From Anaeramoeba ignava BMAN (taxonomy: Eukaryota > Protista > Anaeramoebae), in contig JAPDFW010000042.1 of NCBI GenBank assembly GCA_028826165.1, positions 1 through 55,850 of the forward strand: a stretch of DNA of 55,850 bases, written 5' to 3'. A model generated the notes under the pieces. It did not search any database and was not told the origin of the DNA. It worked only from the letters and a program-made list of their open reading frames with translations. Shown in pieces: positions 2,273-55,850 of the stretch (the first letter of the stretch is position 1; every line of letters starts with the position of its first letter). Position numbers and translations under genes: made by a program.

Positions 2273-4120
2273 ATGAATGATTGTTTATTTTTGGTTCAAA
2301 TCAAAAACCAAAACTTATAAAAAATAAACCAAATGAAATAAAAACCAATTCAATTTAAATTTGAAAATGAAAATGAAAATGAAAATGAAAAACAAATTAA
2401 ACAAATTTCATCAAGTTTTTCAATAATTTTCCTTTTTAAAAATGGAAAAGCAATAGAATATTTAAGAGATTCAAAACAAAATCCTTCAAAAATCCAAATT
2501 GAAAATATACAAAAAGTAACTGTTGGTGCTCTAAATGAAACTATTTTAACAATAGAAGGAAATGTATTTGCAAAAGGAATGAATATTAATCCAAAAAATC
2601 CATATCAATTTATCAATATTTCATCATTGATTGAAGATACAAATGATAGAATAATTCAAGATATTGTTTCTGGATATAATTCAATTTACTTATTAACTTC
2701 AAATCAAAATGTTTATGGAATTGGTGATAATGAACATGGTCAATTTGGTTTTGATTCTGTAACACTTAGAAAAACAGAAAAACCAGTTTTAATGATGAAA
2801 AATGTTTCTAAAATATTTTCAGGAAATTCTTCAAAATATGTTTTTCTTTTAAATCCAAATCAAGAATTATTTGGATGCGGATATAATTATTCAAGTCAAC
2901 TTGGATTAGGAGAATCAAGAAGAAATGAAAAAAAAATCCAAAAATTAACCAAAATCCAAAATATTCCAAAAGGTAAAATAATTGATATTCAATGTGGAAC
3001 TAATCATTCAATAATGTTGATTGAAGATGAAGAAGAAGATCAAAATCCAAAAAGAAAACTTTATTCATGTGGATCTTCTGAATATAATGGACTTGGTAAA
3101 TATGAAAATACTTATGAATTTACTGAAATCAAATCATCTTTATTTGAGAATGATAATCATATTGTTGATTTTTCTGTTGGAAATGTTCATACTTTGATTT
3201 TAACAAAAAAAGGAAAATTAATAGTATTTGGAAGTAATTTATTTGGTGAATTAGGAACTGGAAATACAAAAGATCAATTAATTCCAATTCAAATTGAACT
3301 TCCTAAATTAAGATTTAATAAAGATATTTCCAATTATCATGTTTCTTGTGGATATTTCAATTCATTTATTTATTATTCTCCTTGTCCTTCTTTTTTCAAT
3401 CTTGAAGAAGATTTGATAAAATTATTCAGAAGAAAAGAATTTTGTGATATTTCATTTAAAACCAAAAATGGAGAAATAATTGAAGCTCATAAATTAATAT
3501 TGAAATATAGATTAAATCAAAATCGAATTGAAAAACTTCAAGAAATTATTTCAAAAAAATCAATTAAAGAATCAAATCAAATATTTGAAATGATTTATTC
3601 AAATAATTCTAAAATAAATCCAATATTATATTCAGAAATCAAAGAAATTATAAATTACAATGAAAAAATTGAAGAAACAATGAAAAGAATTTATTTAAAT
3701 GAAAATGAAAAAGATTTTATAATTGAAAGAAAAGAAAAGAAATATAAATTTCCCAAATTAATATTAATAATGAGAAGTGAATTATATCGAGGAATGTTTT
3801 TATCTGTTACAGAAGATAAATCTAATAAAGTTACAGATTATAGTGAATTAAGTAATGAATCATTTCAAATATTAGAATATTGGATTTATTTAAATCAAAT
3901 CAAAGATGAAATTAAAATTAAACAAGAAATTATTCAAGTGGATGATTTTAATGAATTAAACGAGGAAAATTTTGAAATAATTGAATATTTTGAAAAAGAA
4001 ATTCAAATTACACAAGAAATGATTGATGAAATTAAAATTGGAATTGATTATTTTCAATTAAATCAAACAAATCCAAATTTATTTGATTTATTAATTAATA
4101 AATTTAATAATCAAAATTAA
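2273..4120 (+). CDS. RCC1-repeat propeller + tandem BTB protein, copy 1 (5' end frameshifted)
   Basis: ATG at 2273 in the family context (MNDCLF), several 1-nt homopolymer losses before ORF 2579..4120. RCC1 motifs GDNEHGQFG, GCGYNYSSQLGLG, SVGNVHTLILT. BTB motifs FCDISF..IEAHKLIL and FPKLILIMRSELYRGMF. Confidence 0.85.
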
Positions 4121-4318: not shown

Positions 4319-6135
4319 ATGAATGATTGTTTATTTTTTGGTCAAAACCAATCACCAAAACTAATTAAAGATAAACCAGAAAAAATAAAAAAACCAATTC
4401 AATTTAAATTTGAAAATGAAAATGAAAATGAAAATGAAAATGAAAAACAAATTAAACAAATTGAATCATCAAATAGATCAGTAATTTTCCTTTTTAAAAA
4501 TGGAAAAGCAATAGAATATTCATTTAATTCAAATCAAAATCCTTCAAAAATCCAAATTGAAGAAAATATTCAAAAAGTAACTATTTGCTCTCAAAATGAA
4601 GCTATTTTAACAAAAGAAGGAAATGTATTGATTAAAGGAGATAATATTAATCCAAATAATCCAAATGAATTTATCAATATTTCATCATTAATTGAAGATA
4701 CAAATGATAGAATAATTGAAGATATTGTTTCTGGAAACAATTCAATTTACTTATTAACTTCAAATCAAAATGCTTATGGAATTGGTGATAATGAATATGG
4801 TCAACTTGGTTTTGATTCTAAAACACTTTATAAAACAGAAAAACCAATTTTAATGATGAAAAATGTTTCTAAAATATTTTCAGGAAATACTTCAGTTTTC
4901 GTTTTTCTTTTAAATTCAAATCAAGAATTATTTGGATGCGGAAATAATGTATACGGTCAACTTGGATTAGGAAAATCAAGAAAAGAAAAAAAAATCCAAA
5001 AATTAACCAAAATACAAAATATTCCAAAAGGTAAAATAATTGATATTAAATGTGGAATTACTCATTCAGTAATGATGATTGAAAATGAAAATGAAAATGA
5101 AAATGAAAATCCAAAAAGAAAACTTTATTCATGTGGATATTATCAATTTAATGGACTTGGCCAAAGAGATGGAGATACTAATGAATTTACTGAAATCAAA
5201 TCATCTTTATTTGAAAATGATGATATTCTTGATATTTCTGTTGGTTATTATCATACTTTGATTTTAACTTCTAATTCGAAATTAATAGTATTTGGAGGTA
5301 ATTATCATGGTCAATTAGGAACTGGAAATACAAAAGTCATTTAATTCCAATTCAAATTGAACTTCCTAAATTAAGATTCGATGAAGATATTTCTAATTAT
5401 CATGTTTCTTGTGGATTCCACAAATCATTTCTTTATTATTCCCCTTTTTCTTTTTCCAATCTTGAAGAAGATTTGATAAAATTATTTGAAAGAAAAGAAT
5501 TTTGTAATATTTCATTTAAAACCGAAAATGGAGAAATAATTGAAGCTCATAAATTAATATTGAAATATAGATTAAATCAAAATGAAAATGAAATTGAAAA
5601 ACTTCAAGAAATTATTTCAAAAAAATCAATTAAAGAATCAAATCAAATATTTGAAATGATTTATTCAAACAAAAAAATAAATCCAAAATTATATTCTGAA
5701 ATTAAAGAAATTATAAATTACAATGAAAAAATTGAAGAAACAATGAAAAGAATTTATTTAAATGAAAATGAAAATGAAAATGAAAATGAAAAAGATTTTA
5801 TAATTGAAAGAAAAGAAAAACAATATAAATTTCCAAAATTAATATTAATAATGAGAAGTGAATTATATCGAGGAATGTTTTTATCTGTAACTGAAGATAA
5901 ATCAAATAAAGTTACAGATTATAGTGAATTAAGTGAAGAATCATTTCAAATATTTGAATATTGGATTTATTCAAATCAAATTAAAAAAGAAATTAAAATT
6001 ACACAAGAAATCATTAATGAAATTCAAATTGGAATTGATTATTTTCAATTAAATCAAACAAATCCAAATTTATTTGATTTATTAATTAACAAATTTAATA
6101 ATCAAAATTATAAAGAAAAATGTTTAATTTTTTGA
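4319..6135 (+). CDS. RCC1 + BTB-BTB protein, copy 2, ends in CaaX (CLIF); one frameshift near 5335
   Basis: ORFs 4319..5344 and 5473..6135 join if one A is added in 'caaaagtcat' (copy 3 reads 'caaaaagtcat'). Confidence 0.88.
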
Positions 6136-6277
6136 AAGTTAAAATTAAAATCAAAATTAAAATTAAAATTAAAATTAAAATTAAAATTAAAATTAAAATT
6201 AAAAATTAAAATTAAAATTAAAATTAAAATTAAAATTAAAAATTAAAATCATTTTTTCATTTTTTTCCTTTTTAAAA

Positions 6278-8059
6278 ATGAATGATTGTTTATTTTTCGG
6301 TTCAAATCAAAAACCAAAACTTATAAAAAATAAACCAAATAAAATAATAAAACCAATTCAATTTAAATTTGAAAATGAAAATGAAAATGAAAATGAAAAA
6401 CAAATTAAACAAATTTCATCAGGAAATTTTTCAACAATTTTCCTTTTTGAAAATGGAAAAGTAATAGAATATTTAAATGAAAATGATTTAAATCAAAATC
6501 CTTCAAAAATTCAAATTGAAAATATTCAAAAAGTAACTGTTGGTGCTCTAAATGAAACTATTTTAACAATAGAAGGAAATGTATTTGCAAAAGGAATGAA
6601 TATTAATCCAAAAAATCCATATCAATTTATCAATATTTCATCATTAATTGAAGATACAAATGATAGAATAATTGAAGATATTGTTTCTGGATATAATTCA
6701 ATTTACTTATTAACTTCAAATCAAAATGTTTATGGAATTGGTGATAATGAATATGGTCAACTTGGTTTTGATTCTGTAACACTTAGAAAAACAGAAAAAC
6801 CAATTTTAATGATGAAAAATGTTTCTAAAATATTTTCAGGAAATTATTCATATTCCGTTTTTCTTTTGAATTCAAATCAAGAATTATTTGGATCTGGAAA
6901 TAATGAATATGGTAAACTTGGATTAGGAGAATCAAGAATCAAAGAAACGAAAATCCAAAAATTAACCAAAATCCAAAATATTCCAAAAGGTAAAATAATT
7001 GATATTCAAACTGGAAATTATCATTCAGTAATGTTGATTGAAAATGAAGATGAAAATGAAAATCCGAAAAGAAAACTTTATTCATGTGGATATTATCAAT
7101 TTAATGGACTTGGCAAAAATAAAAATACTTATGAATTTACTGAAATCAAATCATCTTTATTTGAAAATGATAATATTGTTGATTTTTCTGTTGGAAATGC
7201 TCATACTTTGATTTTAACTTCTAATTCAAAATTATTCGGATTTGGAGATAATTTTTGTGGTGAAATAGGAACTGTATATGCAAAAAGTCATTTAACTCCA
7301 ATTCAAATTGAACTTCCTAAATTAAGATTTAATGAAGATATTTCTAATTATCATGTTTCTTGTGGAAATTCCAAATCATTTCTTTATTATTCTCCTTTTT
7401 CTTTTTCCAATCTTGAAGAAGATTTGATAAAAATATTTAGAAGAAAAGAATTTTGTGATATTTCATTTAAAACCAAAAATGGAGAAATAATTGAAGCTCA
7501 TAAATTAATATTGAAATATAGATTAAATCAAAATGAAAATCAAATTGAAAAACTTCAAGAAATTATTTCAAATAAATCAATTAAAGAATCAAATCAAATA
7601 TTTGAAATGATTTATTCAAACAACTCCAAAATAAATCCAAAATTATATTTTGAAATTAAAGAAATTATAAATTCCAATGAAAAAATTGAAGAAACAATGA
7701 AAAGAATTTATTTAAATGAAAATGAAAATGAAAATGAAAAAGATTTTATAATTGAAAGAAAAGAAAAACAATATAAATTCCCTAAATTAATATTAATAAT
7801 GAGAAGTGAATTATATCGAGGAATGTTTTTATCTGTAACTGAAGATAAATCTAATAAAGTTACAGATTATAGTGAATTAAGTGAAGAATCATTTCAAATA
7901 TTTGAATATTGGATTTATTCAAATCAAATTAAAGATGAAATTAAAATTACACAAGAAATCATTGATGAATTAGAAACAGGAATTGATTATTTTCAATTAA
8001 ATCAAACATATCCAAATTTATTTGATTTATTAATTAACAAATTTAATAATCAAAATTAA
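6278..8059 (+). CDS. RCC1 + BTB-BTB protein, copy 3
   Basis: Intact 593-aa ORF with the same motifs; ends NNQN*. Confidence 0.92.
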   Translation: MNDCLFFGSNQKPKLIKNKPNKIIKPIQFKFENENENENEKQIKQISSGNFSTIFLFENGKVIEYLNENDLNQNPSKIQIENIQKVTVGALNETILTIEGNVFAKGMNINPKNPYQFINISSLIEDTNDRIIEDIVSGYNSIYLLTSNQNVYGIGDNEYGQLGFDSVTLRKTEKPILMMKNVSKIFSGNYSYSVFLLNSNQELFGSGNNEYGKLGLGESRIKETKIQKLTKIQNIPKGKIIDIQTGNYHSVMLIENEDENENPKRKLYSCGYYQFNGLGKNKNTYEFTEIKSSLFENDNIVDFSVGNAHTLILTSNSKLFGFGDNFCGEIGTVYAKSHLTPIQIELPKLRFNEDISNYHVSCGNSKSFLYYSPFSFSNLEEDLIKIFRRKEFCDISFKTKNGEIIEAHKLILKYRLNQNENQIEKLQEIISNKSIKESNQIFEMIYSNNSKINPKLYFEIKEIINSNEKIEETMKRIYLNENENENEKDFIIERKEKQYKFPKLILIMRSELYRGMFLSVTEDKSNKVTDYSELSEESFQIFEYWIYSNQIKDEIKITQEIIDELETGIDYFQLNQTYPNLFDLLINKFNNQN

Positions 8060-8374
8060 AATTAAAATTAAAATTAAAATTAAAATCAAAATTAAAATTA
8101 ATAATCAAAATCAAAATAAAAATTAAAATAAAAATTAAAAATTAAAATTAAAATTAAAAATTAAAATTCAAATTAAAATTAAAATCAAAATCAAAATTAA
8201 AATCAAAATTAAAATTCAAATTAAAATCAAAATCAAAATTAAAATTAAAATTAAAATTAAAATTAAAATTAAAATCAAAATTAAAATTAAAATTAAAATT
8301 AAAATTAAAATTAAAATTAAAATCAAAAATTAAAATCATTTTTTCATTTTTTTCATTTTTTTTCTTTTTCAAAA

Positions 8375-10189
8375 ATGAATGAAATTATATTTTTTGGTGC
8401 AAATTATTTCCCTAAATTTATCATAAATAAACCAGAAAAAATAGTAAAACCAATTCAATTTAAATTTGAAAATAAAAATGAAAATGAAAATGAAGAATTA
8501 AATGAAAAACAAATTAAACAAATTGAATCATCAAAGATTTCACTAATTTTCCTTTTTAAAAATGGAAAAGCAATAGAATATTTAACTGAAAATGATTCAA
8601 ATCAAAATCCTGTTAAAATCCAAATTGAAGAAAATATTCAAAAAGTAACTGTTGGTTTTGAAAATGAAGCTATTTTAACAATGGAAGGAAATGTATTTGC
8701 CAAAGGAAAAAGAATTATTCCACAAAATCCTTATAAATTTATCAATATTTCATCATTAATTGAAGATATAAATGATAGAATAATTGAAGATATTGTTTCT
8801 GGATACAAATCAATTTACTTATTAACTTCAAATCAAAATGTTTATGGAATTGGTTCTAATTATTCTGGTCAACTTGGCTTAAATTATAAATCACTTAGAA
8901 AAACAGAAAAACCAATTTTAATGATGAAAAATATTTCTAAAATATTTTCAGGAAATACTTCATTTCACGTTTTTCTTTTGAATTCAAATCAAGAATTATT
9001 TGGATGCGGAAGTAACGAATTTGGCCAACTTGGATTAGGAGAATCAATATCAGAAGAAGAAACAAAAATCCAAAAATTAACCAAAATCCAAAATATTCCA
9101 AAAGGTAAAATAATTGATATTAAATGTGGATATTTTCATTCAATAATGTTGATTGAAGATGAAAATCAAAATGAAAATCAAAATCAAAATCCAAAAAGAA
9201 AACTTTATTCATGTGGAAGTAAATACAAGAATGGACTTAATCAGCTTGTTAATGAATTTACTGAAATCAAATCATCTTTATTTGAAAATGATAATATTGT
9301 TGATTTTTCTGTTGGTGATGAACATACTTTGATTTTAACATCCAATTCGAAATTAATAGTATTTGGAAATAACTTTAGTGGTCAATTAGGAACTGGAGAT
9401 ACAAAAGATCAAATAATTCCAATTCAAATTGAACTTCCTGAATTAAGATTTAATGAAGAAATTTCCAATTATCATGTTCTTTGTGGATACGAAAAATCAT
9501 TTCTTTATTATTCCCCTTTTTCTTTTTCCAATCTTGAAGAAGATTTGATAAAAATATTTAGAAGAAAAGAATTTTGTGATATTTCATTTAAAACCAAAAA
9601 TGGAGAAATAATTGAAGCTCATAAATTAATATTGAAATATAGATTAAATCAAAATGAAAATGAAATTGAAAAACTTCAAGAAATTATTTCAAATAAATCA
9701 ATTAAAGAATCAAATCAAATATTTGAAATGATTTATTCAAATAGAATAATAAATTCAAAATTATATTCAGAAATTAAAGAAATTATAAATTCCAATGAAA
9801 AAATTGAAGAAACAATGAAAAGAATTTATTTAAATGAAAATGAAAATGATTTTATTATTGAAAGAAAAGAAAAACAATATAAATTTCCCAAATTAATATT
9901 AATAATGAGAAGTGAATTATATCGAGGAATGTTTTTATCTGTAACAAATGATAATTCTAATAAAGTTACAGATTATAGTGAATTAAGTGAAGAATCATTT
10001 CAAATATTTGAATATTGGATTTATTCAAATCAAATTAAAGATGAAATTAAAATTACACAAGAAATCATTGATGAATTAGAAACAGGAATTGATTATTTTC
10101 AATTAAATCAAACAAATCCAAATTTATTTGATTTATTAATTAACAAATTTAATAATCAAAATTATAAAGAAAAATGTTTAATTTTTTAA
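8375..10189 (+). CDS. RCC1 + BTB-BTB protein, copy 4, with CaaX
   Basis: Intact 604-aa ORF; ends YKEKCLIF*. Confidence 0.92.
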   Translation: MNEIIFFGANYFPKFIINKPEKIVKPIQFKFENKNENENEELNEKQIKQIESSKISLIFLFKNGKAIEYLTENDSNQNPVKIQIEENIQKVTVGFENEAILTMEGNVFAKGKRIIPQNPYKFINISSLIEDINDRIIEDIVSGYKSIYLLTSNQNVYGIGSNYSGQLGLNYKSLRKTEKPILMMKNISKIFSGNTSFHVFLLNSNQELFGCGSNEFGQLGLGESISEEETKIQKLTKIQNIPKGKIIDIKCGYFHSIMLIEDENQNENQNQNPKRKLYSCGSKYKNGLNQLVNEFTEIKSSLFENDNIVDFSVGDEHTLILTSNSKLIVFGNNFSGQLGTGDTKDQIIPIQIELPELRFNEEISNYHVLCGYEKSFLYYSPFSFSNLEEDLIKIFRRKEFCDISFKTKNGEIIEAHKLILKYRLNQNENEIEKLQEIISNKSIKESNQIFEMIYSNRIINSKLYSEIKEIINSNEKIEETMKRIYLNENENDFIIERKEKQYKFPKLILIMRSELYRGMFLSVTNDNSNKVTDYSELSEESFQIFEYWIYSNQIKDEIKITQEIIDELETGIDYFQLNQTNPNLFDLLINKFNNQNYKEKCLIF

Positions 10190-10264
10190 AAGTTAAAATC
10201 TTTTTTATTTTTTCGTTTCTTGATCATTATTAGAAAAAAAAAAGAGATGGAATTTTGAACTTGC

Positions 10265-12094
10265 TCAAAGAAAGAAGCATTCAAGTTCAGAAATTTTCCA
10301 AAATCCATCTCTGCCTGCAAAATAATTTTTTGCATGAGTACTTTTTGATTTGATTCCATATGGAAGATGATATGCATAACCAAAACGAGAAGAATCTCCA
10401 GTTGATAAATCAAAAGCAGTAACTGACAAATCTTCATTACCAAAACAAGGTCCATAGCTTGGATCATAAAGAAGAGCAAAAGATTCACGGAAAGATCTAA
10501 CAAATAGTTTTGTGGGACTGGAATTGTGGATATTCTTCAATGAAAATAAATAAGCTTTGGGATCTTTGATTCCCGCTTTCTCAGGTAACGATGGCCAACC
10601 AACTTCGGTAAAACCTCCAAAAATGAATCCGTCATCACTTTTGATAAGAACTAAAGTCGCCCCTTTATTGTCACAATATTCATGAAAGAGTCTTGCTTGG
10701 GAACCATCTCTTTTGGATGAAAACCCCAATTTCATATTATAGAAAAATTGATCGTTATTCATTAAGGTTTTGAGTGTGTTTCTTAGTTGTTCTGAATTCA
10801 CAATGGATGAACTTTCTACATTTGATTCTATTCGTGCTTTTTCCTTTTTTTCTTCTTCTTTCTTCTTCTGGTTTTCCTCTTGAATCAGTTTTTGTTGGAA
10901 AGGTTTCAAAGATTGGATGTCTCGTTCCTTTTGAAAATTTTGATTTCTGAGAAGTTGCACTTCATATCTCAACCCTGCTGTTTCTTGATCTTTTTGGTTG
11001 ATTTCAATCTTCAAACTCAAGATTCTATCCTTGAGTTTTTGGATTTTGTTTTGGGTTTCCATTTTTTCCATCAAATCAACATTTTCCTTGTTTTTTTGCT
11101 CAAGTTCTGATTGGAGATTTTGAATCTGGTTTTCTAGCATTTCGACTCTTGGGTTTTTCTTGATGATATCATTACTCATTTGCTCAAATCCATTCTTCCA
11201 TCTCTCATCATTCTCATTTTGCGGGATTTGTTGTTGGATCTGATTGGTGGCATTCTTTAACGGTTCTTTTGTGAAAGATTGAGCTTTTCTTGGAGAAGAA
11301 TACAGGAAAGAAAACGGAGGAATATTCTGGAATGATGGGAAATAATCCACATTGGAATCAAAGGAATCAATGGATAATTGGGAGAAAAGTGTGTGAATAA
11401 AAGTTTTCAAAGCATTTTTTTCTTTGGTAATTTTTCCGATCTTTTTCGATTGATTTTCAAACCATTTATGAATAAATTCCAAAAAAATTGATTCAAGTTT
11501 TTCTCCTCGGGAAATCTTCTTTTCAACTAATTTCTGGATTTCTTGCATTTCTAAAAGCAATAAACTTGATGAGTTTTTGAGATCATGGAAATTATCAAGA
11601 AGAAAATTAATACAAATATTTTGGATTTCCACTAAATTATTTTTTCCACTCATTTTCAGAAACTCAAAACAATTTGAATGATTCAAATTTTCAATTATTC
11701 TTTCACGAAGAAAATGAGAAAGAAAACCCAATTGGAATTTATTAGAAGCTGTTAAAAATGGGATTAATTCGTGAATGGATTGTTTGCGTAAGTGGATTTT
11801 GCCTGTATAAATATAATAAAGAATAAATTCTATTGTTTCTTGATTGATTCCTTCAAGAAAAATCTCTGAAATTTGTTGTTGACTGAGAATTGCTTTAAAA
11901 AAGGGACTTCTCACACTCAAAATTATTTTATGTGCTTGTAATTCAATTTGTGTTCCCTTTTCTTGAATAAAAATGGAAAAATCTTTGAAAGTATTTTCTA
12001 AAAGGAAATGTGAAAAATCTTGTAGAAGCAAATCTTTGGATTGTTCTGGAAAAATAAATGAATCTGTAAGTTCTGTTCGTTTTTCGTTATTCAT
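10265..12094 (-). CDS. BTB-BACK-coiled-coil-TLDc protein
   Basis: 609-aa intronless ORF. BTB: DFSIFI..LQAHKIILSVRSPFFKAIL..ILYYIYTG. BACK-like: NCFEFL..ICINFLLDNF. Q/E/K coil. TLDc: SSKRDG..FHEYCDNKGATLVLIKS..FIFGGFT..YGPCFG..ISELECF. Confidence 0.9.
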   Translation of the reverse strand: MNNEKRTELTDSFIFPEQSKDLLLQDFSHFLLENTFKDFSIFIQEKGTQIELQAHKIILSVRSPFFKAILSQQQISEIFLEGINQETIEFILYYIYTGKIHLRKQSIHELIPFLTASNKFQLGFLSHFLRERIIENLNHSNCFEFLKMSGKNNLVEIQNICINFLLDNFHDLKNSSSLLLLEMQEIQKLVEKKISRGEKLESIFLEFIHKWFENQSKKIGKITKEKNALKTFIHTLFSQLSIDSFDSNVDYFPSFQNIPPFSFLYSSPRKAQSFTKEPLKNATNQIQQQIPQNENDERWKNGFEQMSNDIIKKNPRVEMLENQIQNLQSELEQKNKENVDLMEKMETQNKIQKLKDRILSLKIEINQKDQETAGLRYEVQLLRNQNFQKERDIQSLKPFQQKLIQEENQKKKEEEKKEKARIESNVESSSIVNSEQLRNTLKTLMNNDQFFYNMKLGFSSKRDGSQARLFHEYCDNKGATLVLIKSDDGFIFGGFTEVGWPSLPEKAGIKDPKAYLFSLKNIHNSSPTKLFVRSFRESFALLYDPSYGPCFGNEDLSVTAFDLSTGDSSRFGYAYHLPYGIKSKSTHAKNYFAGRDGFWKISELECFFL

Positions 12095-12180
12095 TTCTTT
12101 TTGAAAAGCAAAAAAAATAAATTGAAAAGAAAAATGAAATTAAAAAAAAATATTTTTTCATTTTTTTTTCTTTTTCAAAA
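12095..12180. promoter_or_regulatory. Candidate 86-bp bidirectional core promoter with TCATTT elements on both strands
   Basis: Head-to-head ATGs; 'ttttttcattttttttt' on + and 'aaaaatgaaa' (tttcattttt on -). Confidence 0.5.
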
Positions 12181-13989
12181 ATGAATGAAATTATATTTTT
12201 TGGTTTAAATTATAATCCAAAACTTATTAAAAATGAACCAGATAAAATAACAAAACCAATTCAATTTAAATTTGAAAATGAAAATGAAAATGAAAAACAA
12301 ATTAAACAAATTTCAACAGGAAATTATTCAACAATTTTCCTTTTTAAAAATGGAAAAGCAATAGAATATTCAAAACAAAATCCTGTTAAAATCCAAATTG
12401 AAGAAAATATTCAAAAAGTAACTGTTGGTATTCAAAATGAAGCTATTTTAACAATAGAAGGAAATGTATTTGCAAAAGGAGAAGATATTAATCCAAAAAA
12501 TCCAAATGAATTTATTAATATTTTATCATTAATTAAAGATACAAATGATAGAATAATTAAAGATATTGTTTCTGGAGCTGTTTCAATTTACTTATTAACT
12601 TCAAATCAAAATGCTTATGGAATTGGTTCTAATTATTTTGGTCAACTTGGTTTTGATTATAAAACATTTAAAAAAGCAGAAAAACCAATTTTAATGATGA
12701 AAAATGTTTCTAAAATATTTTCAGGAAATAATTCATATTCTGTTTTTCTTTTAAATTCAAATCAAGAATTATTTGGATGCGGAAATAATGGATCTGGTCA
12801 ACTTGGATTAGGAGAATCAAGAAGAAAAGAAACAAAAATCCAAAAATTAACCAAAATCCAAAATATTCCAAAAGGTAAAATAATTGATATTAAATGTGGA
12901 TCTGTTCATTCAATAATGTTGATTGAAAATGAAATTGAAAATCAAAATCCAAAAAGAAAACTTTATTCATGTGGATATTCTGGATATAATGGACTTGGTA
13001 AAATATATGAAAATACTTATCAATTTACTGAAATCAAATCATCTTTATTTGAAAATAATAATATTGTTGATTTTTCTGTTGGATATGATCATACTTTGAT
13101 TTTAACATCCAATTCAAAACTAATAGTATTTGGAGATAATTATTATGGTCAATTAGGAATTGGAGATACAAATGATCAATCAATTCCAATTCAAATTGAA
13201 CTTCCTAAATTAATATTTAATGAAAATATTTCTAATTATCATATTTCTTGTGGATATTATAGATCATTTCTTTATTATTCTCCTTTTTCTTTTTCCAATC
13301 TTGAAGAAGATTTGATAAAATTATTTGAAAGAAAAGAATTTTGTGATATTTCATTTAAAACCAAAAATGGAGAAATAATTGAAGCTCATAAATTAATATT
13401 GAAATATAGATTAAATCAAAATCAAAATCAAAATGAAATTGAAAAACTTCAAGAAATTATTTCAAAAAAATCAATTAAAGAATCAAATCAAATATTTAAA
13501 ATGATTTATTCAAATAATTCCAAAATAAATCCAAAATTATATTCTGAAATTAAAGAAATTATAAATTCAAATGAAAAAATTGAAGAAACAATGAAAAGAA
13601 TTTATTTAAATGAAAATGAAAAAGATTTTATTATTGAAAGAAAAGAAAAACAATATAAATTTCCAAAATTAATATTAATAATGAGAAGTGAATTATATCG
13701 AGGAATGTTTTTATCTGTAACAAATGATAATTCTAATAAAGTTACAGATTATAGTGAATTAAGTAATAAATCATTTCAAATATTTGAATATTGGATTTAT
13801 TCAAATCAAATTAAAAAAGAAATTGAAATTACACAAGAAATAATTGATGAAATTAAAATTGGAATTGATTATTTTCAATTAAATCAAACAAATCCAAATT
13901 TATTTGATTTATTAATTAAAAAATTTAATAATCAAAATTGGAATCAAAATCAAAATCAAAAAAAGAAAGAAAAATGTTTAATTTTTTAA
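12181..13989 (+). CDS. RCC1 + BTB-BTB protein, copy 5, with CaaX
   Basis: Intact 602-aa ORF; ends KKKEKCLIF*. Confidence 0.92.
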   Translation: MNEIIFFGLNYNPKLIKNEPDKITKPIQFKFENENENEKQIKQISTGNYSTIFLFKNGKAIEYSKQNPVKIQIEENIQKVTVGIQNEAILTIEGNVFAKGEDINPKNPNEFINILSLIKDTNDRIIKDIVSGAVSIYLLTSNQNAYGIGSNYFGQLGFDYKTFKKAEKPILMMKNVSKIFSGNNSYSVFLLNSNQELFGCGNNGSGQLGLGESRRKETKIQKLTKIQNIPKGKIIDIKCGSVHSIMLIENEIENQNPKRKLYSCGYSGYNGLGKIYENTYQFTEIKSSLFENNNIVDFSVGYDHTLILTSNSKLIVFGDNYYGQLGIGDTNDQSIPIQIELPKLIFNENISNYHISCGYYRSFLYYSPFSFSNLEEDLIKLFERKEFCDISFKTKNGEIIEAHKLILKYRLNQNQNQNEIEKLQEIISKKSIKESNQIFKMIYSNNSKINPKLYSEIKEIINSNEKIEETMKRIYLNENEKDFIIERKEKQYKFPKLILIMRSELYRGMFLSVTNDNSNKVTDYSELSNKSFQIFEYWIYSNQIKKEIEITQEIIDEIKIGIDYFQLNQTNPNLFDLLIKKFNNQNWNQNQNQKKKEKCLIF

Positions 13990-14095
13990 AAAAGAAATAA
14001 TTATTGAAATCAAAATCAAAATTAAAATTAAAATCAAAATTAAAATTAAAATCATTTTTTCATTTTTCATTTTTCATTTTTTTTCTTTTTCAAAA

Positions 14096-15916
14096 ATGAA
14101 TGAAATTATATTTTTTGGTTTAAATTATAATCCAATTCTTATCAAAAATGAACCAAATAAAATAACAAAACCAATTCAATTTAAATTTGAAAATGAAAAT
14201 GAAAATGAAAAACAAATTAAACAAATTTCATCAGGCAAATTTTCAACAATTTTCCTTTTTGAAAATGGAAAAGCAATAGAATATTCAAGAGATTCAAAAC
14301 AAAATCCTTCAGAAATCCAAATTGAAGAAAATATTCAAAAAGTAACTGTTGGTGTTCAAAATGAAGCTATTTTAACAATAGAAAGAAATGTATTTGCCAA
14401 AGGAAAAAATATTAATCCAAAAAATCCAAATGAATTTATCAATATTTCATCATTAATTGAAGATACAAATGATAGAATAATTGAAGATATTGTTTCTGGA
14501 TCTCATTCAATTTATTTATTAACTTCAAATCAAAATGCTTATGGAATTGGTTCTAATTATTTTGGTCAACTTGGTTTTGATTATAAAACACTTGATGAAA
14601 CACATAAACCCATTTTAATGATGAAAAATGTTTCTAAAATATTTTCAGGAAATAATTCATATTCTTTTTTTCTTTTAAATTCAAATCAAGAATTATTTGG
14701 ATGCGGACATACTTATTATGGTCAAATTGGATTAGGAAAATCAATATCAGAAGAAAGAAAAATCCAAAAATTAACCAAAATACAAAATATTCCAAAAGGT
14801 AAAATAATTGATATTCAATCTGGATCTGCTCATTCAATAATGTTGATTGAAAATGAAAATGAAAATGAAAATGAAAATCCAAAAAGAAAACTTTATTCAT
14901 GTGGATATTCTAGATATAATGGACTTGGAAAAATATATGAAAATACTTATCAATTTACTGAAATCAAATCATCTTTATTTGAAAATGATAATATTCTTGA
15001 TTTTTCTGTTGGATATTTACATACTTTGATTTTAACAAAAAAAGGAAAATTAATTGCGTTTGGAGGTAATTATTATGGTCAATTAGGAATTGGAAATACA
15101 AAAGATCAAATAATTCCAATTCAAATTAAACTTCCTAAATTAAGATTTAATGAAAATATTTCTAATTATCATGTTTCTTGTGGATATAACAATTCATTTC
15201 TTTATTATTCTCATTCTTCTTTTTCCAATCTTGAAGAAGATTTGATAAAATTATTTAAAAGAAAAGAATTTTGTAATATTTCATTTAAAGCAGAAAATGG
15301 AGAAATAATTGAAGCTCATAAATTAATATTGAAATATAGATTAAATCAAAATCAAAATGAAATTGAAAAACTTCAAGAAATTATTTCAAAAAAATCAATT
15401 AAAGAATCAAATCAAATATTTGAAATGATTTATTCAAATAATTCCAATATAAATCCAAAATTATATTCTGAAATTAAAGAAATTATAAATTCCAATGAAA
15501 AAATTGAAGAAACAATGAAAAGAATTTATTTAAATGAAAATGAAAATGAAAAAGATTTTATTATTGAAAGAAAAGAAAAACAATATAAATTTCCCAAATT
15601 AATATTAATAATGAGAAGTGAATTATATCGAGGAATGTTTTTATCTGTAACTGAAGATACTTCTAATAAAGTTACAGATTATAGTGAATTAAGTAATAAA
15701 TCATTTCAAATATTAGAATATTGGATTTATTCAAATCAAATTAAAGAAGAAATTGAAATTACACAAGAAATAATTGATGAAATTAAAATTGGAATTGATT
15801 ATTTTCAATTAAATCAAACAAATCCAAATTTATTTGATTTATTAATTAACAAATTTAATAATCAAAATCAAAACAATAAGAAAGAAAAAATGTTTAATTT
15901 TTTAAAAAAGAAATAA
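14096..15916 (+). CDS. RCC1 + BTB-BTB protein, copy 6 (CaaX DNA present but out of frame by 1 nt)
   Basis: 606-aa ORF; tail DNA gaaaaaa-tgt-tta-att-ttt-taa. Confidence 0.9.
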   Translation: MNEIIFFGLNYNPILIKNEPNKITKPIQFKFENENENEKQIKQISSGKFSTIFLFENGKAIEYSRDSKQNPSEIQIEENIQKVTVGVQNEAILTIERNVFAKGKNINPKNPNEFINISSLIEDTNDRIIEDIVSGSHSIYLLTSNQNAYGIGSNYFGQLGFDYKTLDETHKPILMMKNVSKIFSGNNSYSFFLLNSNQELFGCGHTYYGQIGLGKSISEERKIQKLTKIQNIPKGKIIDIQSGSAHSIMLIENENENENENPKRKLYSCGYSRYNGLGKIYENTYQFTEIKSSLFENDNILDFSVGYLHTLILTKKGKLIAFGGNYYGQLGIGNTKDQIIPIQIKLPKLRFNENISNYHVSCGYNNSFLYYSHSSFSNLEEDLIKLFKRKEFCNISFKAENGEIIEAHKLILKYRLNQNQNEIEKLQEIISKKSIKESNQIFEMIYSNNSNINPKLYSEIKEIINSNEKIEETMKRIYLNENENEKDFIIERKEKQYKFPKLILIMRSELYRGMFLSVTEDTSNKVTDYSELSNKSFQILEYWIYSNQIKEEIEITQEIIDEIKIGIDYFQLNQTNPNLFDLLINKFNNQNQNNKKEKMFNFLKKK

Positions 15917-16309
15917 TTATTGAAATCAAAATCAAAATTCAAATTAAAATTAAAATTAAAATTAAAATTAAAATCAAAATTAAAATCTAAAATTAAAATC
16001 AAAATTAAAATTAAAATTCAAATTAAAATTAAAATTAAAATTAAAATTAAAATTAAAAATTAAAATTAAAATTTAATAATTAAAATTAAAATCAAAATTA
16101 AAATCAAAATTAAAATTAAAATTAAAATTAAAATTAAAATTAAAATTAAAATTAAAATTAAAATTAAAATTAAAAATTAAAATTAAAATTAAAATTAAAA
16201 TTAAAATTAAAATTAAAATTAAAATTAAAATCAAAATCAAAATTAAAATTAAAATTAAAATTAAAATTAAAAATCCTAAAATCATTTTTTCATTTTTTTC
16301 TTTTCAAAA

Positions 16310-18137
16310 ATGAATGAAATTATATTTTTTGGTGAGAATAATCTTGGTTTAGATTTTCAAAATAAACAAAAAAAAATAAAAAAACCAATTCAATTTAAAT
16401 TTGAAAATGAAAATGAAAATGAAAATGAAAAACAAATTAAACAAATTGAATCAAGTTTTTATTCAACAATTTTCCTTTTTAAAAATGGAAAAGCAATAGA
16501 ATATTCAAAAGATTCAAAACAAAATCCTTCAGAAATCCAAATTGAAGAAAATATTCAAAAAGTAACTGTTGGTTATTCAAATAAAGCTATTTTAACAATA
16601 GAAGGAAATGTATTTGCCAAAGGAACAGAGATCAATCCAGAAAAACCAAATGAATTTATCAATATTTCATCATTAATTGAAGATATAAATGATAGAATAA
16701 TTCAAGATATTGTTTCTGGCGGTTATTCAATTTACTTATTAACTTCAAATCAAAATGCTTATGGAATTGGTTCTAATTATTTTGGTCAACTTGGTTTTGA
16801 TTCTAAAGCACTTGATGAAACACATAAACCCATTTTAATGATGAAAAATGTTTATAAAATATTTTCAGGAAATACTTCATATTCTTTTTTTCTTTTAAAT
16901 TCAAATCAAGAATTATTTGGATGTGGTGATAATCAATATGGTCAAGTTGGATTAGGAGAATCAAGAAAAGAAGAAATAAAAATTCAAAAATTAACCAAAA
17001 TCCAAAATATTCCAAAAGGTAAAATAATTGATATTCAAACAGGAAATTATCATTCAATAATGTTAATTGAAAATAAATGAAAATGAAAACCAAAATCCAA
17101 AAAGAAAACTTTATTCATGTGGATCTTCTGGATATAATGGACTTGGCAAAATATATGAAAATACTTATGAATTTACTGAAATCAAATCATCTTTATTTGA
17201 AAATGATGATATTCTTAAAATTTCTGTTGGAAATACTCATACTTTGATTTTAACTTCTAATTCAAAATTGATTGGATTTGGAGGTAATTTATTTGGACAA
17301 TTAGGAACTGGAAATATAAATAATCAAATAATTCCAATTCAAATTGAATTTCCTAAATTAAGATTTAATGAAAATATTTCTAATTATCATATTTCTTGTG
17401 GATATTGGAACAATTCACTTCTTTATTATTCTCCTTTTTCTTTTTCCAATCTTGAAGAAGATTTGATAAAATTATTTGAAAGAAAAGAATTTTGTGATAT
17501 TTCATTTAAAACCAAAACTGGAGAAATAATTGAAGCTCATAAATTAATATTGAAATATAGATTAAATCAAAATGAAAATGAAATTGAAAAACTTAAAGAA
17601 ATTATTTCAAAAAAATCAATTAAAGAATCTAATCAAATATTTGAAATGATTTATTCAAATAATTCCAATATAAATCCAAAATTATATTCTGAAATTAAAG
17701 AAATTATAAATTCCAATGAAAAAATTGAAGAAACAATGAAAAGAATTTATTTAAATGAAGATGAAAATGAAAAAGATTTTATAATTGAAAGAAAAGAAAA
17801 ACAATATAAATTTCCAAAATTAATATTAATAATGAGAAGTGAATTATATCGAGGAATGTTTTTATCTGTAACAAATGATAATTCTAATAAAGTTACAGAT
17901 TATAGTGAATTAAATAATAAATCATTTCAAATATTAGAATATTGGATTTATTCAAATCAAATTAAAGAAGAAATTGAAATTACACAAGAAATAATTGATG
18001 AAATTAAAATTGGAATTGATTATTTTCAATTTAATGAAACAAATCCAAATTTATTTGATTTATTAATTAACAAATTTAATAATCAAAATCAAAACAATAA
18101 GAAAGAAAAAATGCTTAATTTTTTAAAAAAGAAATAA
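16310..18137 (+). CDS. RCC1 + BTB-BTB protein, copy 7; frameshift near 17073
   Basis: ORFs 16310..17080 and 17067..18137. The break is a 2-nt loss within the GAAAAT microsatellite. Nearly identical to copy 8 over the propeller. Confidence 0.85.
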
Positions 18138-18659: not shown

Positions 18660-20432
18660 ATGAATGAAATTATATTTTTTGGTGAGAATAATCTTGGTTT
18701 AGATTTTCAAAATAAACAAAAAAAAATAAAAAAACCAATTCAATTTAAATTTGAAAATGAAAATGAAAATGAAAAACAAATTAAACAAATTGAATCAAGT
18801 TTTTATTCAACAATTTTCCTTTTTAAAAATGGAAAAGCAATAGAATATTCAAGAGATTCAAAACAAAATCCTGTTAAAATTCAAATTGAAGAAAATATTC
18901 AAAAAGTAACTGTTGGTTATTCAAATGAAGCTATTTTAACAATAGAAGGAAATGTATTTGCCAAAGGAACAGAGATCAATCCAGAAAAATCAAATGAATT
19001 TATCAATATTTCATCATTAATTGAAGATATAAATGATAGAATAATTCAAGATATTGTTTCTGGCGGTTATTCAATTTATTTATTAACTTCAAATCAAAAT
19101 GCTTATGGAATTGGTTCTAATTATTTTGGTCAACTTGGTTTTGATTCTAAAGCACTTGATGAAACACATAAACCCATTTTAATGATGAAAAATGTTTCTA
19201 AAATATTTTCAGGAAATACTTCATATTCTTTTTTTCTTTTAAATTCAAATCAAGAATTATTTGGATGTGGTGATAATCAATATGGTCAAGTTGGATTAGG
19301 AGAATTAAGAAAAGAAGAAATAAAAATTCAAAAATTAACCAAAATCCAAAATATTCCAAAAGGTAAAATAATTGATATTCAAACAGGAAACTATCATTCA
19401 ATAATGATGATTGAAAATGAAAATGAAAATGAAAACCAAAATCCAAAAAGAAAACTTTATTCATGTGGATCTTCTGGATATAATGGACTTGGCAAAATAT
19501 ATGAAGATACTTATCAATTTACTGAAATCAAATCATCTTTATTTGAAAATGATGATATTCTTAAAATTTCTGTTGGAAATACTCATACTTTGATTTTAAC
19601 TTCTAATTCAAAATTTATTGTATTTGGAGGTAATTTATTTGGACAATTAGGAACTGGAGATACAAAAGATCAATTAATTCCAATTCAAATTGAATTTCCT
19701 AAATTAAGATTTAATGAAAATATTTCTAATTATCATATTTCTTGTGGATATTGGAACAATTCACTTCTTTATTATTCTCATTCTTCTTTTTCCAATCTTG
19801 AAGAGGATTTGATAAAACTATTTGAAAGAAAAGAATTTTGTGATATTTCATTTAAAACCAAAACTGGAGAAATAATCAAAGCTCATAAATTAATATTGAA
19901 ATATAGATTAAATGAAAATGAAAATGAAATTGAAAAACTTGAAGAAATTATTTCAACTAAATCAATTAAAGAATCAAATCAAATATTTGAAATGATTTAT
20001 TCAAATAATTCTAAAATAAATCCAAAATTATATTCTGAAATTAAAGAAATTATAAATTCAAATGAAAAAATTGAAGAAACAATGAAAAGAATTTATTTAG
20101 ATGAAAATGAAAAAGATTTTATAATTGAAAGAAAAGAAAAACAATATAAATTTCCTAAATTAATATTAATAATGAGAAGTGAATTATATCGAGGAATGTT
20201 TTTATCTGTTACAGAAGATAAATCTAATAAAGTTACAGATTATAGTGAATTAAGTAATAAATCATTTCAAATATTTGAATATTGGATTTATTCAAATCAA
20301 ATTAAAGATGAAATTCAAATTACACAAGAAATAATCGATGAAATTCAAATTGGAATTGATTATTTTCAATTAAATCAAACAAATCCAAATTTATTAGATT
20401 TATTAATTAACAAATTTAATAATCAAAATTAA
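18660..20432 (+). CDS. RCC1 + BTB-BTB protein, copy 8
   Basis: Intact 590-aa ORF; ends NNQN*. Confidence 0.92.
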   Translation: MNEIIFFGENNLGLDFQNKQKKIKKPIQFKFENENENEKQIKQIESSFYSTIFLFKNGKAIEYSRDSKQNPVKIQIEENIQKVTVGYSNEAILTIEGNVFAKGTEINPEKSNEFINISSLIEDINDRIIQDIVSGGYSIYLLTSNQNAYGIGSNYFGQLGFDSKALDETHKPILMMKNVSKIFSGNTSYSFFLLNSNQELFGCGDNQYGQVGLGELRKEEIKIQKLTKIQNIPKGKIIDIQTGNYHSIMMIENENENENQNPKRKLYSCGSSGYNGLGKIYEDTYQFTEIKSSLFENDDILKISVGNTHTLILTSNSKFIVFGGNLFGQLGTGDTKDQLIPIQIEFPKLRFNENISNYHISCGYWNNSLLYYSHSSFSNLEEDLIKLFERKEFCDISFKTKTGEIIKAHKLILKYRLNENENEIEKLEEIISTKSIKESNQIFEMIYSNNSKINPKLYSEIKEIINSNEKIEETMKRIYLDENEKDFIIERKEKQYKFPKLILIMRSELYRGMFLSVTEDKSNKVTDYSELSNKSFQIFEYWIYSNQIKDEIQITQEIIDEIQIGIDYFQLNQTNPNLLDLLINKFNNQN

Positions 20433-20819: not shown

Positions 20820-23502
20820 ATGAAAAAAATTCTTTTCTTTTTCTTAATTTTAAATACTTTGTTAACTCAATCAATTCAAACTGATCAAAAACCAATTTTA
20901 ACAGAAATAGAAACATTAACAGAAACAACAAGATATTATTCTACTCCAGATGAAGCTTGGTTTTGGAATTTTATAAGTAATTTTACACTTTGGGGCAACT
21001 TTGGATGGAGTGTTTCAGTTTATGGCAACTTTTTTGTAGGGGGAGCTTATGATGCAAGAAGAGCATTTTTTTTCAGATATAATGGATCAAATTGGAATCA
21101 AGAACAAATTTTCTATGAGCCATCATTTCCAGGTTTTGGATATTCTGTTTCAGTTTATGAAGATGTTATTGTTATTGGTGCTTATGGTTCCAAAGGTGCA
21201 TTTGTTTACAGATATAATGGAGCAATTTGGAATGAAGAACAAATTTTGAATGAATCAATTCCATATTTTGGATATTCTGTTTCAGTTTATGAAGATGTTA
21301 TTGTTATTGGAACTAATGGTGCAAAACAAGCATTTATTTACAGATATAATGGATCAATTTGGAATCTAGAAGAGCATTTCAATAAACCTTCTGTTTCGTA
21401 CTTTGGTTATTCTGTTTCAATTTATGGAAATGTTACTGTTATTGGAACTTATGATGCAAATCAAGTATTTATTTACAGATATAATGGATCAATTTGGAAT
21501 CAAGAAGAAATTTTGAATAAATCCGATTTAAGATTTGGATCTTCTGTTTCAGTTTATGAAGATGTTATTGTTGTTGGAGCTTATGGTGCAAAACAAGCAT
21601 TTATTTACAGATATAATGGATCAATTTGGAATCTAGAACAAATTTTGGATGAACCTTCTGTTTCAAGTTTTGGATATTCTGTTTCAATTTATGAAGATGT
21701 TATTGTTGTTGGAGCTTATTATTCAAATCAAACATTTATTTACAGATATAATGGATCAATTTGGAATCTAGAAGAGCATTTCAATAAACCTTCTGTTTCG
21801 TACTTTGGTTATTCTGTTTCAATTTATAGTAATGTTACTGTTATTGGAGCTTCTGATGCAAATCAAGTATTTGTTTATGAAGCTGATTTAATTCCTCAAG
21901 TTAATATTGTTAATTGTTCATCTTTATTTTCATCATTTGATTGTTATTGGGATAAAATTGAATTTTTCAGAACTTTGAAATATCAAATTAATTATGGATA
22001 TGATTGGATTGATATTGAATCTCCAATTCTTGAAGATGAGAATGTTTATTATCAACAATTTAATTCTTCAAATTTATGTTAATATTACTGGAAATGAATA
22101 TTATTCAATTAAAATTCATGCTTGTGATGTATCTACAATGAAATGTGGTGAATCTTCTTCTTTCATTAATTTAACAACAAAAATTGATTCTGTAAAAGAT
22201 TTCCAATTATTCAATCCTTCAAATTATTCAATTAATGTTACATGGAATTATCCAAATGTTCAAATCAATGAAGGAATTGCTCATCTTGATCATTATAATC
22301 TTTCTTATCTCAATCAATCTGAACCTGATTTAATATCTTTCATTTCAGTTGATAATTCTTCACTTGATTATTTTTTGAATAATTTAGAATCTGAAAATGA
22401 TTATAATATTTCAATTTGTGGATGTAGAACACAAGAATGTGAAGAAGATGATAAAGGAGAAATTGTTGAATCATCAATTTCATTATTTTTTGGAGAAGTT
22501 ACAAATTTAACATGTTCAATTTCATATTCATTAGATATTAATTGTAATTGGAATCAACCAATTAATTGTTCAATTCCATTTTATTATAATTTTACTTATC
22601 AATCAATTTCTCAAAATGATTCAGGAAATTATCAACCAACATCATCAAATCAACAATTTACAGCTCAATTTCCAAATCAAGAATATCAAATCAATATTTC
22701 AGCATGTAATTCAAATGGAAAATGTGGAGATATTTCATCGATTTCAATTACAACTGATAATTTACCAACAGCTCCAACAATTTATGAAACAATTTCCAAA
22801 ATTGAAGAAATTGAATTTAATTTCACAAAATTAACAAATGCAAATAATTATTCAATTTCACTTGATAATGGAACAAATTGGGAAAAATTCACATCTCTTG
22901 ATTTAAGTGGAAATGAAGTAATTGGAATAATAAATGGAATATCAGGAAATATTGAATATAATATTTCAATTCGAGGATGTTCAGATTTGAATTGTGAAAC
23001 ACCATATTTAGGATTACCTAGTTCAATTATTTCAACAAGAGCTAAATTAGGAAATATTACTTCATTAAATTGTAATTCATTAATTAATGGATTTGTTTGT
23101 GATTGGGATTCATTAATTTTATCAAATGGATTAAAAGGATATTCATTTAATTACAATTCAATATCAATTTGTTTATCAACTTTAACAACAAATTATTCAG
23201 TTCTAGGATTAAAAGGAGGAGAATATTATGAAATTTCAGTTTATTCATCAGCTGATTCAAATTGTTTATTTAATGAATATTCAGGAATTAATTCAACAAC
23301 ATCAATTACAATATTATCAACAAATGAATCTAATAATAATTCAAACACAACAGCAATAACTTTAGGTATAATTATTCCTCTTATTATTTTAGGAATTATT
23401 GTTGGAGTTATTTTCTATAAAAAGAAAAAAAGAAAAAAACAATCAAAATCACAAGAAGAAAACAAAAAGGAAAAAGAACTTCAAAATAATTTGGATATTT
23501 AA
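20820..23502 (+). CDS. Type I membrane protein: signal peptide, 7 FG-GAP-like repeats, about 5 FN3-like domains, TM, basic tail (frameshift near 22071)
   Basis: Signal peptide MKKILFFFLILNTLL. Seven FG(Y/W/S)SVS.Y...V.GA repeats of about 45 aa. FN3-like W...Y...Y.I.I.AC patterns. TM ITLGIIIPLIILGIIVGVIFY followed by KKKKRKK. Removing one A joins the two ORFs. Confidence 0.82.
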
Positions 23503-42533: not shown

Positions 42534-42666
42534 AAAAGAAATCAAAAACAACAAAATCAAAAAATTTTTATTTTTTTCTTTCTTTTTAAAATCATTTAGA
42601 AATAAAGCAATTAAAAAATTAAACATTTTTCTTTCTTTTTAATTTTTGATTTTAATAATTTCTTAT

Positions 42667-54600: not shown

Positions 54601-55850
54601 TCTTGATTAATTCTTGAAATTTCTTTTCTGATTCTTCAAGTTGAGAATGAAGTGCTTTTTAATGGCAAATCTGGACTTAATTCTGCAAGTGCAACTTCAT
54701 CAAGAATAACAAGTCCTAAATCATTTTCCTTTTGTTTTTGATTTTGCAATTTTAAAAACATCTTCAATTCCTTTAGTTGTTGTTATTGGTGAACATTGAA
54801 GGAAAAGATTCTCTAAGTGTTCTAAGTTCAAGTTTTTGCAAAAGTTATTTATTTCATGAGGAGGTTTCAAAGATTCCATTATAACTTCAACAGAAATTGA
54901 TTTTGATGTTCCTTTTTTTGATTATAATAATAAATTGAATAAAAATTAAATTAATATATTTCTAAAAAAAAGAAGAAAATATGTTATTTTACCTGGTTTT
55001 CCAATAATAAATAATGGAATTTGTGCATAAACACAAACAAAAATCAATAAACAATTCTCTTTTAAATATAAGTTTTTTGCAATCATTTTTTTTGAAAAAT
55101 CATAATCTAATGATTCAATTAATTTTTTTTGTGAATTATAAATTACGTTTTGGCAGTTTCCAAATAAATTATCATTTCTTTCAAAAATTGCTTCAAAATA
55201 TTGATCTTTGCTTGTTGCTTGTCGACTTGCATAACAAATAAATAAAGATAAGTAAATTGCTTTCTGAAAAAGATTTTTTTCTTTTTCTTTTTCTTTTTCT
55301 TTTTCTGATAATAAAAATCTTCCAGCTTTAGATTCAACAAGCCATTGAAATACTCGAAGAATTCTTGAAACATCTCGAAGTGAAATTAAAGCTGCTAAAT
55401 TCCTTTTGAAATCATCATTTGTTTGATTTGAATATCCATCTTGACGGATATAACTATGAGATTTGGAAATATATTCTTTGAATGATGATCTAATTGCTTG
55501 ATATCTTATGAATTTTTTATCATTGTTGTTTAAAATTGAGTAAAAAGTATTATCAACCATTTTGGAAATGTATACTTGTTCTTGTTTTGATTTTAATGAT
55601 TCAAAACTAAGAACACTATTTTCTAATGAATTTGGAATTTTATGAACTCGATAAACAGCATTTCTAATTTCTTCTTGTTCTTTATTCTTTTTATCTCCAT
55701 AATCAAAAAGTAATCCACAAACCTCTTCTTCTTTATTTTGATCTTCATTATTTTGATTTTCATTATTTTGATTTTCATTATTTTGATTTTCAAAGTGGAA
55801 ATTTTGATTTTCTTTCTCTATATGGATGTGGTAACTTACGCAATAATTTA
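48668..55850 (-). CDS. RNF213-like: RNF213/mysterin-like giant AAA+ ATPase (5' part outside window; several frameshifts)
   Basis: Colinear RNF213-type motifs: VYRVHKIP, ISLRDVSR, IAKNLYLKEN..IPLFIIGKPGTSKS (Walker A, split by intron 54992..54912), FQCSP, VILDEVALAE (Walker B), ISNWVLDPSNTNRG, FGLRDFY, FGSDF, LYEPLYDLLNQNY, FRLIVI, ILNRFEK. Confidence 0.88.

Follow-up and report, generated by a model that had tools for sequence, protein, structure and literature searches.

A CaaX-ended minority in a very large RCC1-BTB-BTB protein family of Anaeramoeba ignava

The 55,850-nt stretch of Anaeramoeba ignava BMAN contig JAPDFW010000042.1 analysed here (the window) carries 11 paralogues encoding an RCC1 propeller followed by two BTB domains, some of which end in a lysine-rich tail closing with the CaaX motif CLIF. 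The reading considered reasonably likely is that these genes belong to a young RCC1-BTB-BTB family of about 1,250 copies with a real CaaX cassette, in which a tailed minority is prenylated and the tail is shuffled among genes by recombination, without acting as a switch. A basic CaaX cassette would have been gained at the C-terminus, most likely once, and the event would have left the last ~33 codons of the gene duplicated after the new stop. In in-frame carriers (about 13-15% of the family), geranylgeranyltransferase type I (GGTase-I) would geranylgeranylate the Cys, X being Phe, and Rce1 and ICMT would finish the prenylated end, placing the adaptor on the cytosolic face of a membrane, with the tail-less majority staying soluble. 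Tail carriage would be set by unequal crossover or conversion in tandem arrays, joining any gene body to any 3' end, and tails would decay through CAA-to-TAA changes in the NQ repeat, short deletions (as in copies 6 and 7) or possibly loop-out between the gene end and the relic duplicate, so that tail states would be fixed per locus and not reversibly switched.

Tail states in the window and across the genome

A preliminary description of this DNA had sorted the 11 paralogues into five with a K-rich CLIF end, four stopping at NNQN and two with the cassette out of frame, and all of these ends were confirmed by position:

2273-4120 (+): copy 1, RCC1-BTB-BTB, tail-less, ending NNQN; start approximate, the assembly having a frame break close to the 5' end
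4319-6135 (+): copy 2, in-frame YKEKCLIF end; body frameshift near 5340
6121-6135 (+): CaaX cassette of copy 2; the stop is TGA
6278-8059 (+): copy 3, intact, tail-less, NNQN stop at 8059; spacer without cassette DNA
8375-10189 (+): copy 4, intact, YKEKCLIF end; cassette 10175-10189
12181-13989 (+): copy 5, intact, 602 amino acids, KKKEKCLIF end; cassette 13975-13989
13990-14020 (+): untranslated relic of the duplicated own 3' end (reads K-E-I-I..), directly after the CaaX stop of copy 5
14096-15916 (+): copy 6, open reading frame (ORF) intact, cassette out of frame (15891-15905, tgt), protein end MFNFLKKK
15870-15890 (+): linker N-N-K-K-E-K with six-A run in copy 6; probable 26-nt deletion junction
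16310-18137 (+): copy 7, chimera, cassette out of frame (18112-18126, tgc); 2-nt deletion near 17075
18660-20432 (+): copy 8, intact, tail-less, ending NNQN; tree sister of copy 7 (support 100)
42611-42650 (-): spare untranslated second KKKEKCLIF cassette (42611-42625) in the 3' flank of the 42667 copy
42667-44454 (-): 42667 copy, KEKEKCLIF end; cassette 42667-42681
44739-46541 (-): intact tail-less copy, ending NNQN; tree sister of the 46636 CaaX copy (support 99)
46636-48448 (-): 46636 copy, KKRKKEKCLIF end, frame-broken body; cassette 46636-46650, start approximate

The full layout is seen in copy 5, with the RCC1 propeller at about amino acids 1-368 and the tandem BTB at about 372-586, followed by KKKEKCLIF and the stop. 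The out-of-frame cassettes translate as ..KKEKMFNFLKKK and a stop (15891-15905) and as ..KKEKMLNFLKKK and a stop (18112-18126). No cassette DNA was found anywhere in the 200-390 nt spacers behind the four NNQN stops. A relic like that behind copy 5 also follows copies 6 and 7 and the 46636 copy (21 of 24 nt matching).

Across the genome (42.8 Mb in 147 contigs), a 23-nt anchor from the 3' end gave 1,256 matches against 1 for the control, which sets the size of the family at about 1,250 copies. DNA encoding CLIF and a stop gave 167 matches against 8 for the reversed control, indicating that the cassette is not due to chance. The 828 matches to the NNQN stop are an upper bound only, as one mismatch was allowed and NNQNQ was thereby admitted. 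A positional sample of 91 copies, taken from contigs C1-C11 only, comprised 66 short ends, 13 CaaX ends, one intact cassette behind an in-frame TAA, four KRKPFLEKE tails and seven other long tails. From this sample the tailed fraction is about 13-15%, or roughly 160-200 genes genome-wide (about one in seven), and the window lies above this average. With a tailed minority of this size and a short majority, the earlier suggestion that the family supplies both membrane-tethered and soluble members is plausible.

Frame-broken genes, with or without a tail, make up 41 of 85 sampled, and in the window assembly four of 11 bodies (copies 1, 2 and 7 and the 46636 copy). Separation of pseudogenes from assembly errors by indel context was tried and proved too noisy.

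Copies 6 and 7 and the exchange of 3' ends

Over its first 1,350 nt copy 7 is 95-100% like copy 8, and its last ~300 nt are like copy 6, reaching 99% near the end. Copy 7 is thus a crossover product, joining the body of copy 8 to the 3' end of copy 6, and the two frameshifted tails represent one event. The linker of copies 6 and 7, with its six A, occurs at only six loci genome-wide, the four others (two on C2 and two on C35) being in the correct frame: on C35 it runs on as KKEK-IQIEK-KKEK-CLIF, and on C2 it leads into a KRKPFLEKE tail. None of the six loci has a five-A form. This absence, together with the longer in-frame form on C35, makes a 26-nt deletion between two KEK repeats a better explanation than a +1 slip, and the frameshift of copies 6 and 7 probably arose by such a deletion in a longer in-frame tail as found on C35. 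The out-of-frame state described earlier stands in the assembly, but its proposed origin by insertion of one extra A is disfavoured, as the linker loci include no five-A parent.

It is doubtful that the extra A of copies 6 and 7 is a nanopore homopolymer error and that both are ordinary in-frame CaaX genes. The assembly was built from nanopore reads, with Racon, Nanopolish and Pilon as polishing tools (PMC11550330), short-read mapping performs poorly in a family of 1,250 copies, and nearly half of the sampled genes are frame-broken, all of which would suit such an error; the same six-A linker nevertheless keeps the correct frame at the four further loci. Read contigs from four runs list no left-out A at 18104-18110 and do list indels elsewhere, although this table proves nothing, with no bridging piece listed and depth swamped by paralogues.

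A tandem-BTB module with a variable propeller

The tandem-BTB adaptor architecture proposed in the preliminary description, RCC1 plus two BTB domains as in known CUL3 adaptors, was borne out by Pfam and AlphaFold2 (AF2). The N-terminal part matches Pfam RCC1/RLD, forms a confident propeller in AF2 and matches UVR8, HERC and RPGR in the PDB, and Pfam places two BTB stretches after it; no N-terminal Rho-like GTPase domain is present in the window copies. The BTB part of the whole-protein AF2 model was unreliable, and a deeper alignment was used for the BTB module, giving a model with pLDDT 95.6 whose nearest shapes are RhoBTB3, LZTR1, BTBD7 and ABTB1. By analogy with adaptors of this build, the family probably consists of cullin-3 substrate adaptors with a variable propeller. 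The variation in the RCC1 repeats clusters at recurring repeat positions, with 21 columns above 2.5 bits, as if a binding face had diversified while its chassis stayed constant.

An unlikely alternative accepts the anchor as real and takes the proteins for membrane scaffolds or small-GTPase regulators (an RCC1-like guanine nucleotide exchange factor or binder with a self-dimerising BTB) in place of ubiquitin-ligase adaptors. The contrast between a conserved BTB part (mean 0.18 bits) and variable RCC1 repeats (0.64 bits) is what an adaptor would be expected to show, and the best solved relatives in a profile search of the PDB include KBTBD4, SPOP and KBTBD2; the genome also holds about nine cullin loci, counted at the level of the cullin family. 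The alternative draws on non-CUL3 BTB dimers among the top PDB shape matches and on Legionella LegG1/PieG, in which RCC1 repeats with a CaaX act on Ran (PMC7157520).

Conservation of the CaaX end

In the five CLIF-ended window copies the Cys stands fourth from the end and is followed by two aliphatic residues. When the Cys codon was left free in a genome search, TGY was found at 67 of 67 sites, seven of them the synonymous TGC, with no replacements. This counts for selection because G-to-A changes should be favoured in a genome of 80% AT, and it agrees with the earlier argument that the tgc of copy 7, synonymous only in the CLIF frame, marks that frame as the selected one. CaaX ends are present in 27 of 120 annotated A. 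ignava paralogues (21 CLIF, 3 CFIF and 3 CSIF), all of the form C-[LSF]-I-F, and none of the 120 has an IF end without the Cys; the linkers before the Cys come in 15 lengths among these 27 tails. Of the cassettes read in DNA, 19 of 21 are in frame, and in non-coding satellite a frame-changing unit occurs in 25 of 42 comparable 60-nt stretches. The pattern fits purifying selection on the CLIF frame; the CaaX end looks selected, and the tail is real and probably functional.

The cassette could instead be neutral, a recent rearrangement that gene conversion has spread and that is unprenylated or without effect. Its scatter on the tree, the decaying relic duplicate behind it, its several loss routes and the frame breaks in nearly half of all copies are compatible with this idea, which is quite improbable given that C, I, F and stop have stayed the same in spite of wide divergence in linker length and sequence, that change at the Cys codon is synonymous only, and that CLIF or CFIF ends also cap distant Ras- and ankyrin-BTB-BTB proteins of A. 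ignava.

Prenylation machinery and predicted anchoring

The prenylation machinery presupposed by the preliminary description was found in the genome. Genes for GGTase-I beta, farnesyltransferase (FTase) beta and RabGGTase beta are present, as typed by best PDB hit (the FTase and GGTase-I beta genes contain introns and were searched exon by exon), along with matches to alpha-subunit repeats (PPTA), ICMT and Rce1. The Rce1-like matches number five, and the CAAX prenyl protease 1 (Ste24) row in supplement 6 of PMC11550330 is without an A. ignava gene.

The X residue is Phe in all 27 tails, in keeping with the GGTase-I rule (Leu, Ile or Phe), and Phe at this position directs geranylgeranylation (PMC9141697), to which the CLIF, CFIF and CSIF tails would accordingly be predicted to be subject. 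A cassette variant ending in CLIL, a canonical GGTase-I end, lies at G000:C35:677003-677025. The net charge in the 10 residues before the Cys ranges from 0 to +6, with a mean of +2.5 over the 27 tails. The tails are K-rich, as had been claimed, but the term polybasic is generous for copies 2 and 4 and the 42667 copy, which have only +2 before the Cys. Prenylation, membrane location and CUL3 binding of the tailed copies are predictions from sequence.

Distribution, gain and loss of the tail

A tally of tail states mapped on the family tree, as suggested in the preliminary description, upheld the dichotomy of present and absent tails and gave no tree signal. On a DNA tree of 83 copies, tail state requires 16 changes, against 17.2 +/- 1.3 with shuffled labels. 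The scatter is alike on trees of the 5' and 3' parts, well-supported sister copies often differ, and a CaaX clade was rejected on whole-gene, 5' and 3' trees. Such randomness is the expected outcome of crossover and conversion within tandem arrays.

A relic matching the gene's own QEII.. codons at 19 or more of 24 nt lies directly after the stop in 9 of 21 cassettes and in 0 of 70 short stops, and at locus L030 the last ~33 codons are still present as a complete second copy. The relic points to one founding rearrangement, consistent with a single origin of the cassette, and may offer a loop-out route back to the tail-less end. Cassettes are blocked by an in-frame TAA (from CAA in the NQ repeat) at L019:5759 and probably at about five more loci, and by frameshift in copies 6 and 7 and P0019.

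A BTB-module tree (a quick tree, with single representatives of 50% clusters as outgroups) places the young family inside a clade (SH-aLRT 99) together with 14 divergent RCC1-BTB proteins, none of which has a CaaX; the motif is likewise absent from all 41 RCC1-type representatives. This position among RCC1-BTB relatives without a tail makes the tail-less state look ancestral. The tree gives no support to descent of the tail from Ras-BTB-BTB-CLIF proteins, which are not sister to the family on it; transfer of the short tail alone from them is possible. Derivation from DNA encoding the N-terminal MNDCLFFG of a neighbour was also rejected: the resemblance to KNDCLIF DNA extends over only ~18 nt, Asp precedes Cys in 1 of 27 tails, and the likeness is probably a coincidence in AT-rich sequence.

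Several points weigh against a selected, once-gained and recombining tail. The basic patch is weak in a number of tails (net 0 to +2 in 13 of 27), and CaaX copies are frame-broken about as often as others (7 of 16 vs 32 of 67). Recent spread by conversion can mimic conservation, and the 67 Cys sites are not independent, so that their count overstates independence. Tailed members could also hide behind the single 50%-cluster representatives among the outgroups, and within the family gain and loss are not distinguishable from the trees.

The contingency-locus style toggle of the preliminary description, in which slipped-strand changes at the gene-spacer junction reversibly make each copy prenylated or soluble, is highly improbable: the linker is indeed built of A-runs and CAAAAT repeats and blocked cassettes do occur, but these are a small minority, the short copies (66 of 91) have no cassette to switch on and represent the apparently ancestral state, the six-A haplotype has a longer C35 parent and no five-A parent, copies 6 and 7 are copies of a single event, and the contigs of the four runs, in a table with no bridging piece, list no indel variant at 18104-18110.

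Further tail types occur in the family. A second recurrent tail, the basic KKKRKPFLEKE.. (L015:2029, L024:5852, L027:2009 and 7850), is like a nuclear localisation signal, and its DNA seems to be akin to the CaaX cassette in a different reading frame. Other tail modules (L028:4126, P0038, L032:6832 and P0101) include a last helix that is duplicated in frame, an acidic tail and a long linker of repeats after which the protein still ends in CFIF. On a 70,520-nt contig, the gene model P0011 continues from the ..KKKEK of an RCC1-BTB copy into a Rac-like domain; this fusion may be an annotation artefact that splices out the CLIF end.

Relation to other BTB proteins and known systems

The near relatives looked up were all Anaeramoeba proteins (20 of 20). 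The tandem-BTB module is found behind Ras-like, ankyrin, Sel1 or RCC1 N-termini in A. ignava and A. flamelloides, and CaaX ends are present in 13 of 149 module representatives, against about 2 expected from the frequency of Cys. By N-terminus type they occur in 5 of 7 Ras and 5 of 58 ankyrin representatives, and several of these ends in A. ignava are likewise CLIF or CFIF. On this sequence comparison, an optional lipid anchor is a recurring feature of the Anaeramoeba superfamily and is not peculiar to the RCC1 group. Ras-like GTPase-BTB-BTB-CaaX proteins with a compact RhoBTB-like architecture are found in both Anaeramoeba species (P0155, P0157, P0162, P0192 and P0223).

RCBTB1 and RCBTB2 combine an RCC1-like domain with two BTB domains and are CUL3 substrate adaptors (PMC4974088). 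The domain order is the same, a propeller followed by tandem BTB, and the likeness is one of architecture alone, animals having a couple of such genes and A. ignava ~1,250. To our knowledge, no CaaX end has been described for RCBTB1 or RCBTB2. RhoBTB3 is a tandem-BTB CUL3 adaptor and the sole RhoBTB with a CAAX (PMC4931677); it shares the tandem-BTB shape (TM 0.69) and the restriction of the CaaX to some paralogues, but has a GTPase at the N-terminus in place of the RCC1 propeller, and the Anaeramoeba Ras-BTB-BTB-CaaX proteins are its closer match. The geranylgeranylated SCF (Skp1-CUL1-F-box) adaptors FBXL2 and FBXO10 (PMC9988375, PMC11573457) resemble the tailed copies in that a cullin-RING adaptor is kept at one membrane compartment by its lipid, as predicted for A. 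ignava, but they act through F-box and CUL1, are single genes and have a constant tail, and FBXL2 is modified by GGTase-III.

Legionella provides both prenylation-tethered RCC1 repeats, in LegG1/PieG (RCC1 repeat plus CAAX), and, in AnkB of strain Paris (PMC5506055), a ubiquitin-ligase adaptor whose CaaX has been lost naturally through a frameshift, although these are bacterial effectors without BTB domains and without a large paralogue family. In the Entamoeba BspA-like leucine-rich repeat (LRR) family, several members carry a CAAX (PMC2843621), giving another expanded protist repeat-protein family with the CAAX end on a subset only; these LRR proteins lack a ligase-adaptor module.

In the open-access literature no prenylated RCC1-BTB family was found, and the main text of the genome paper (PMC11550330) makes no mention of BTB, RCC1, prenylation or ubiquitin. 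The parts of the system are known, namely the RCBTB architecture and an anchor in the style of RhoBTB3 or FBXL2, and what is unusual is the scale: the known prenylated cullin adaptors are isolated genes and few in number, and in A. ignava, a protist with a notable membrane-bound symbiosome, roughly 160-200 genes appear to carry the anchor, which can be exchanged between ~1,250 variable adaptors. A switch would have been the surprising element, and it does not hold. If the tails are prenylated, the family would offer a test case for the recombination of subcellular address with substrate specificity in a very large adaptor family. It is conceivable, if improbable, that the family forms a diversified intracellular recognition repertoire, with hypervariable propellers on a soluble or geranylgeranylated chassis, whose tethered ~15% would serve as a membrane-patrolling ubiquitin-ligase arm on the symbiosome or phagosome, sorting kept symbionts from food or invaders.

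Other features of the window

Within the array, a gene for a BTB plus TLDc protein sits between copies 4 and 5 at 10265-12094 (-). At 20820-23502, a protein with an FG-GAP propeller, FN3 and a transmembrane segment is encoded in two ORFs, probably one frameshifted surface-protein gene. A large multi-ORF gene without a Pfam match occupies 48668-55560 (-).

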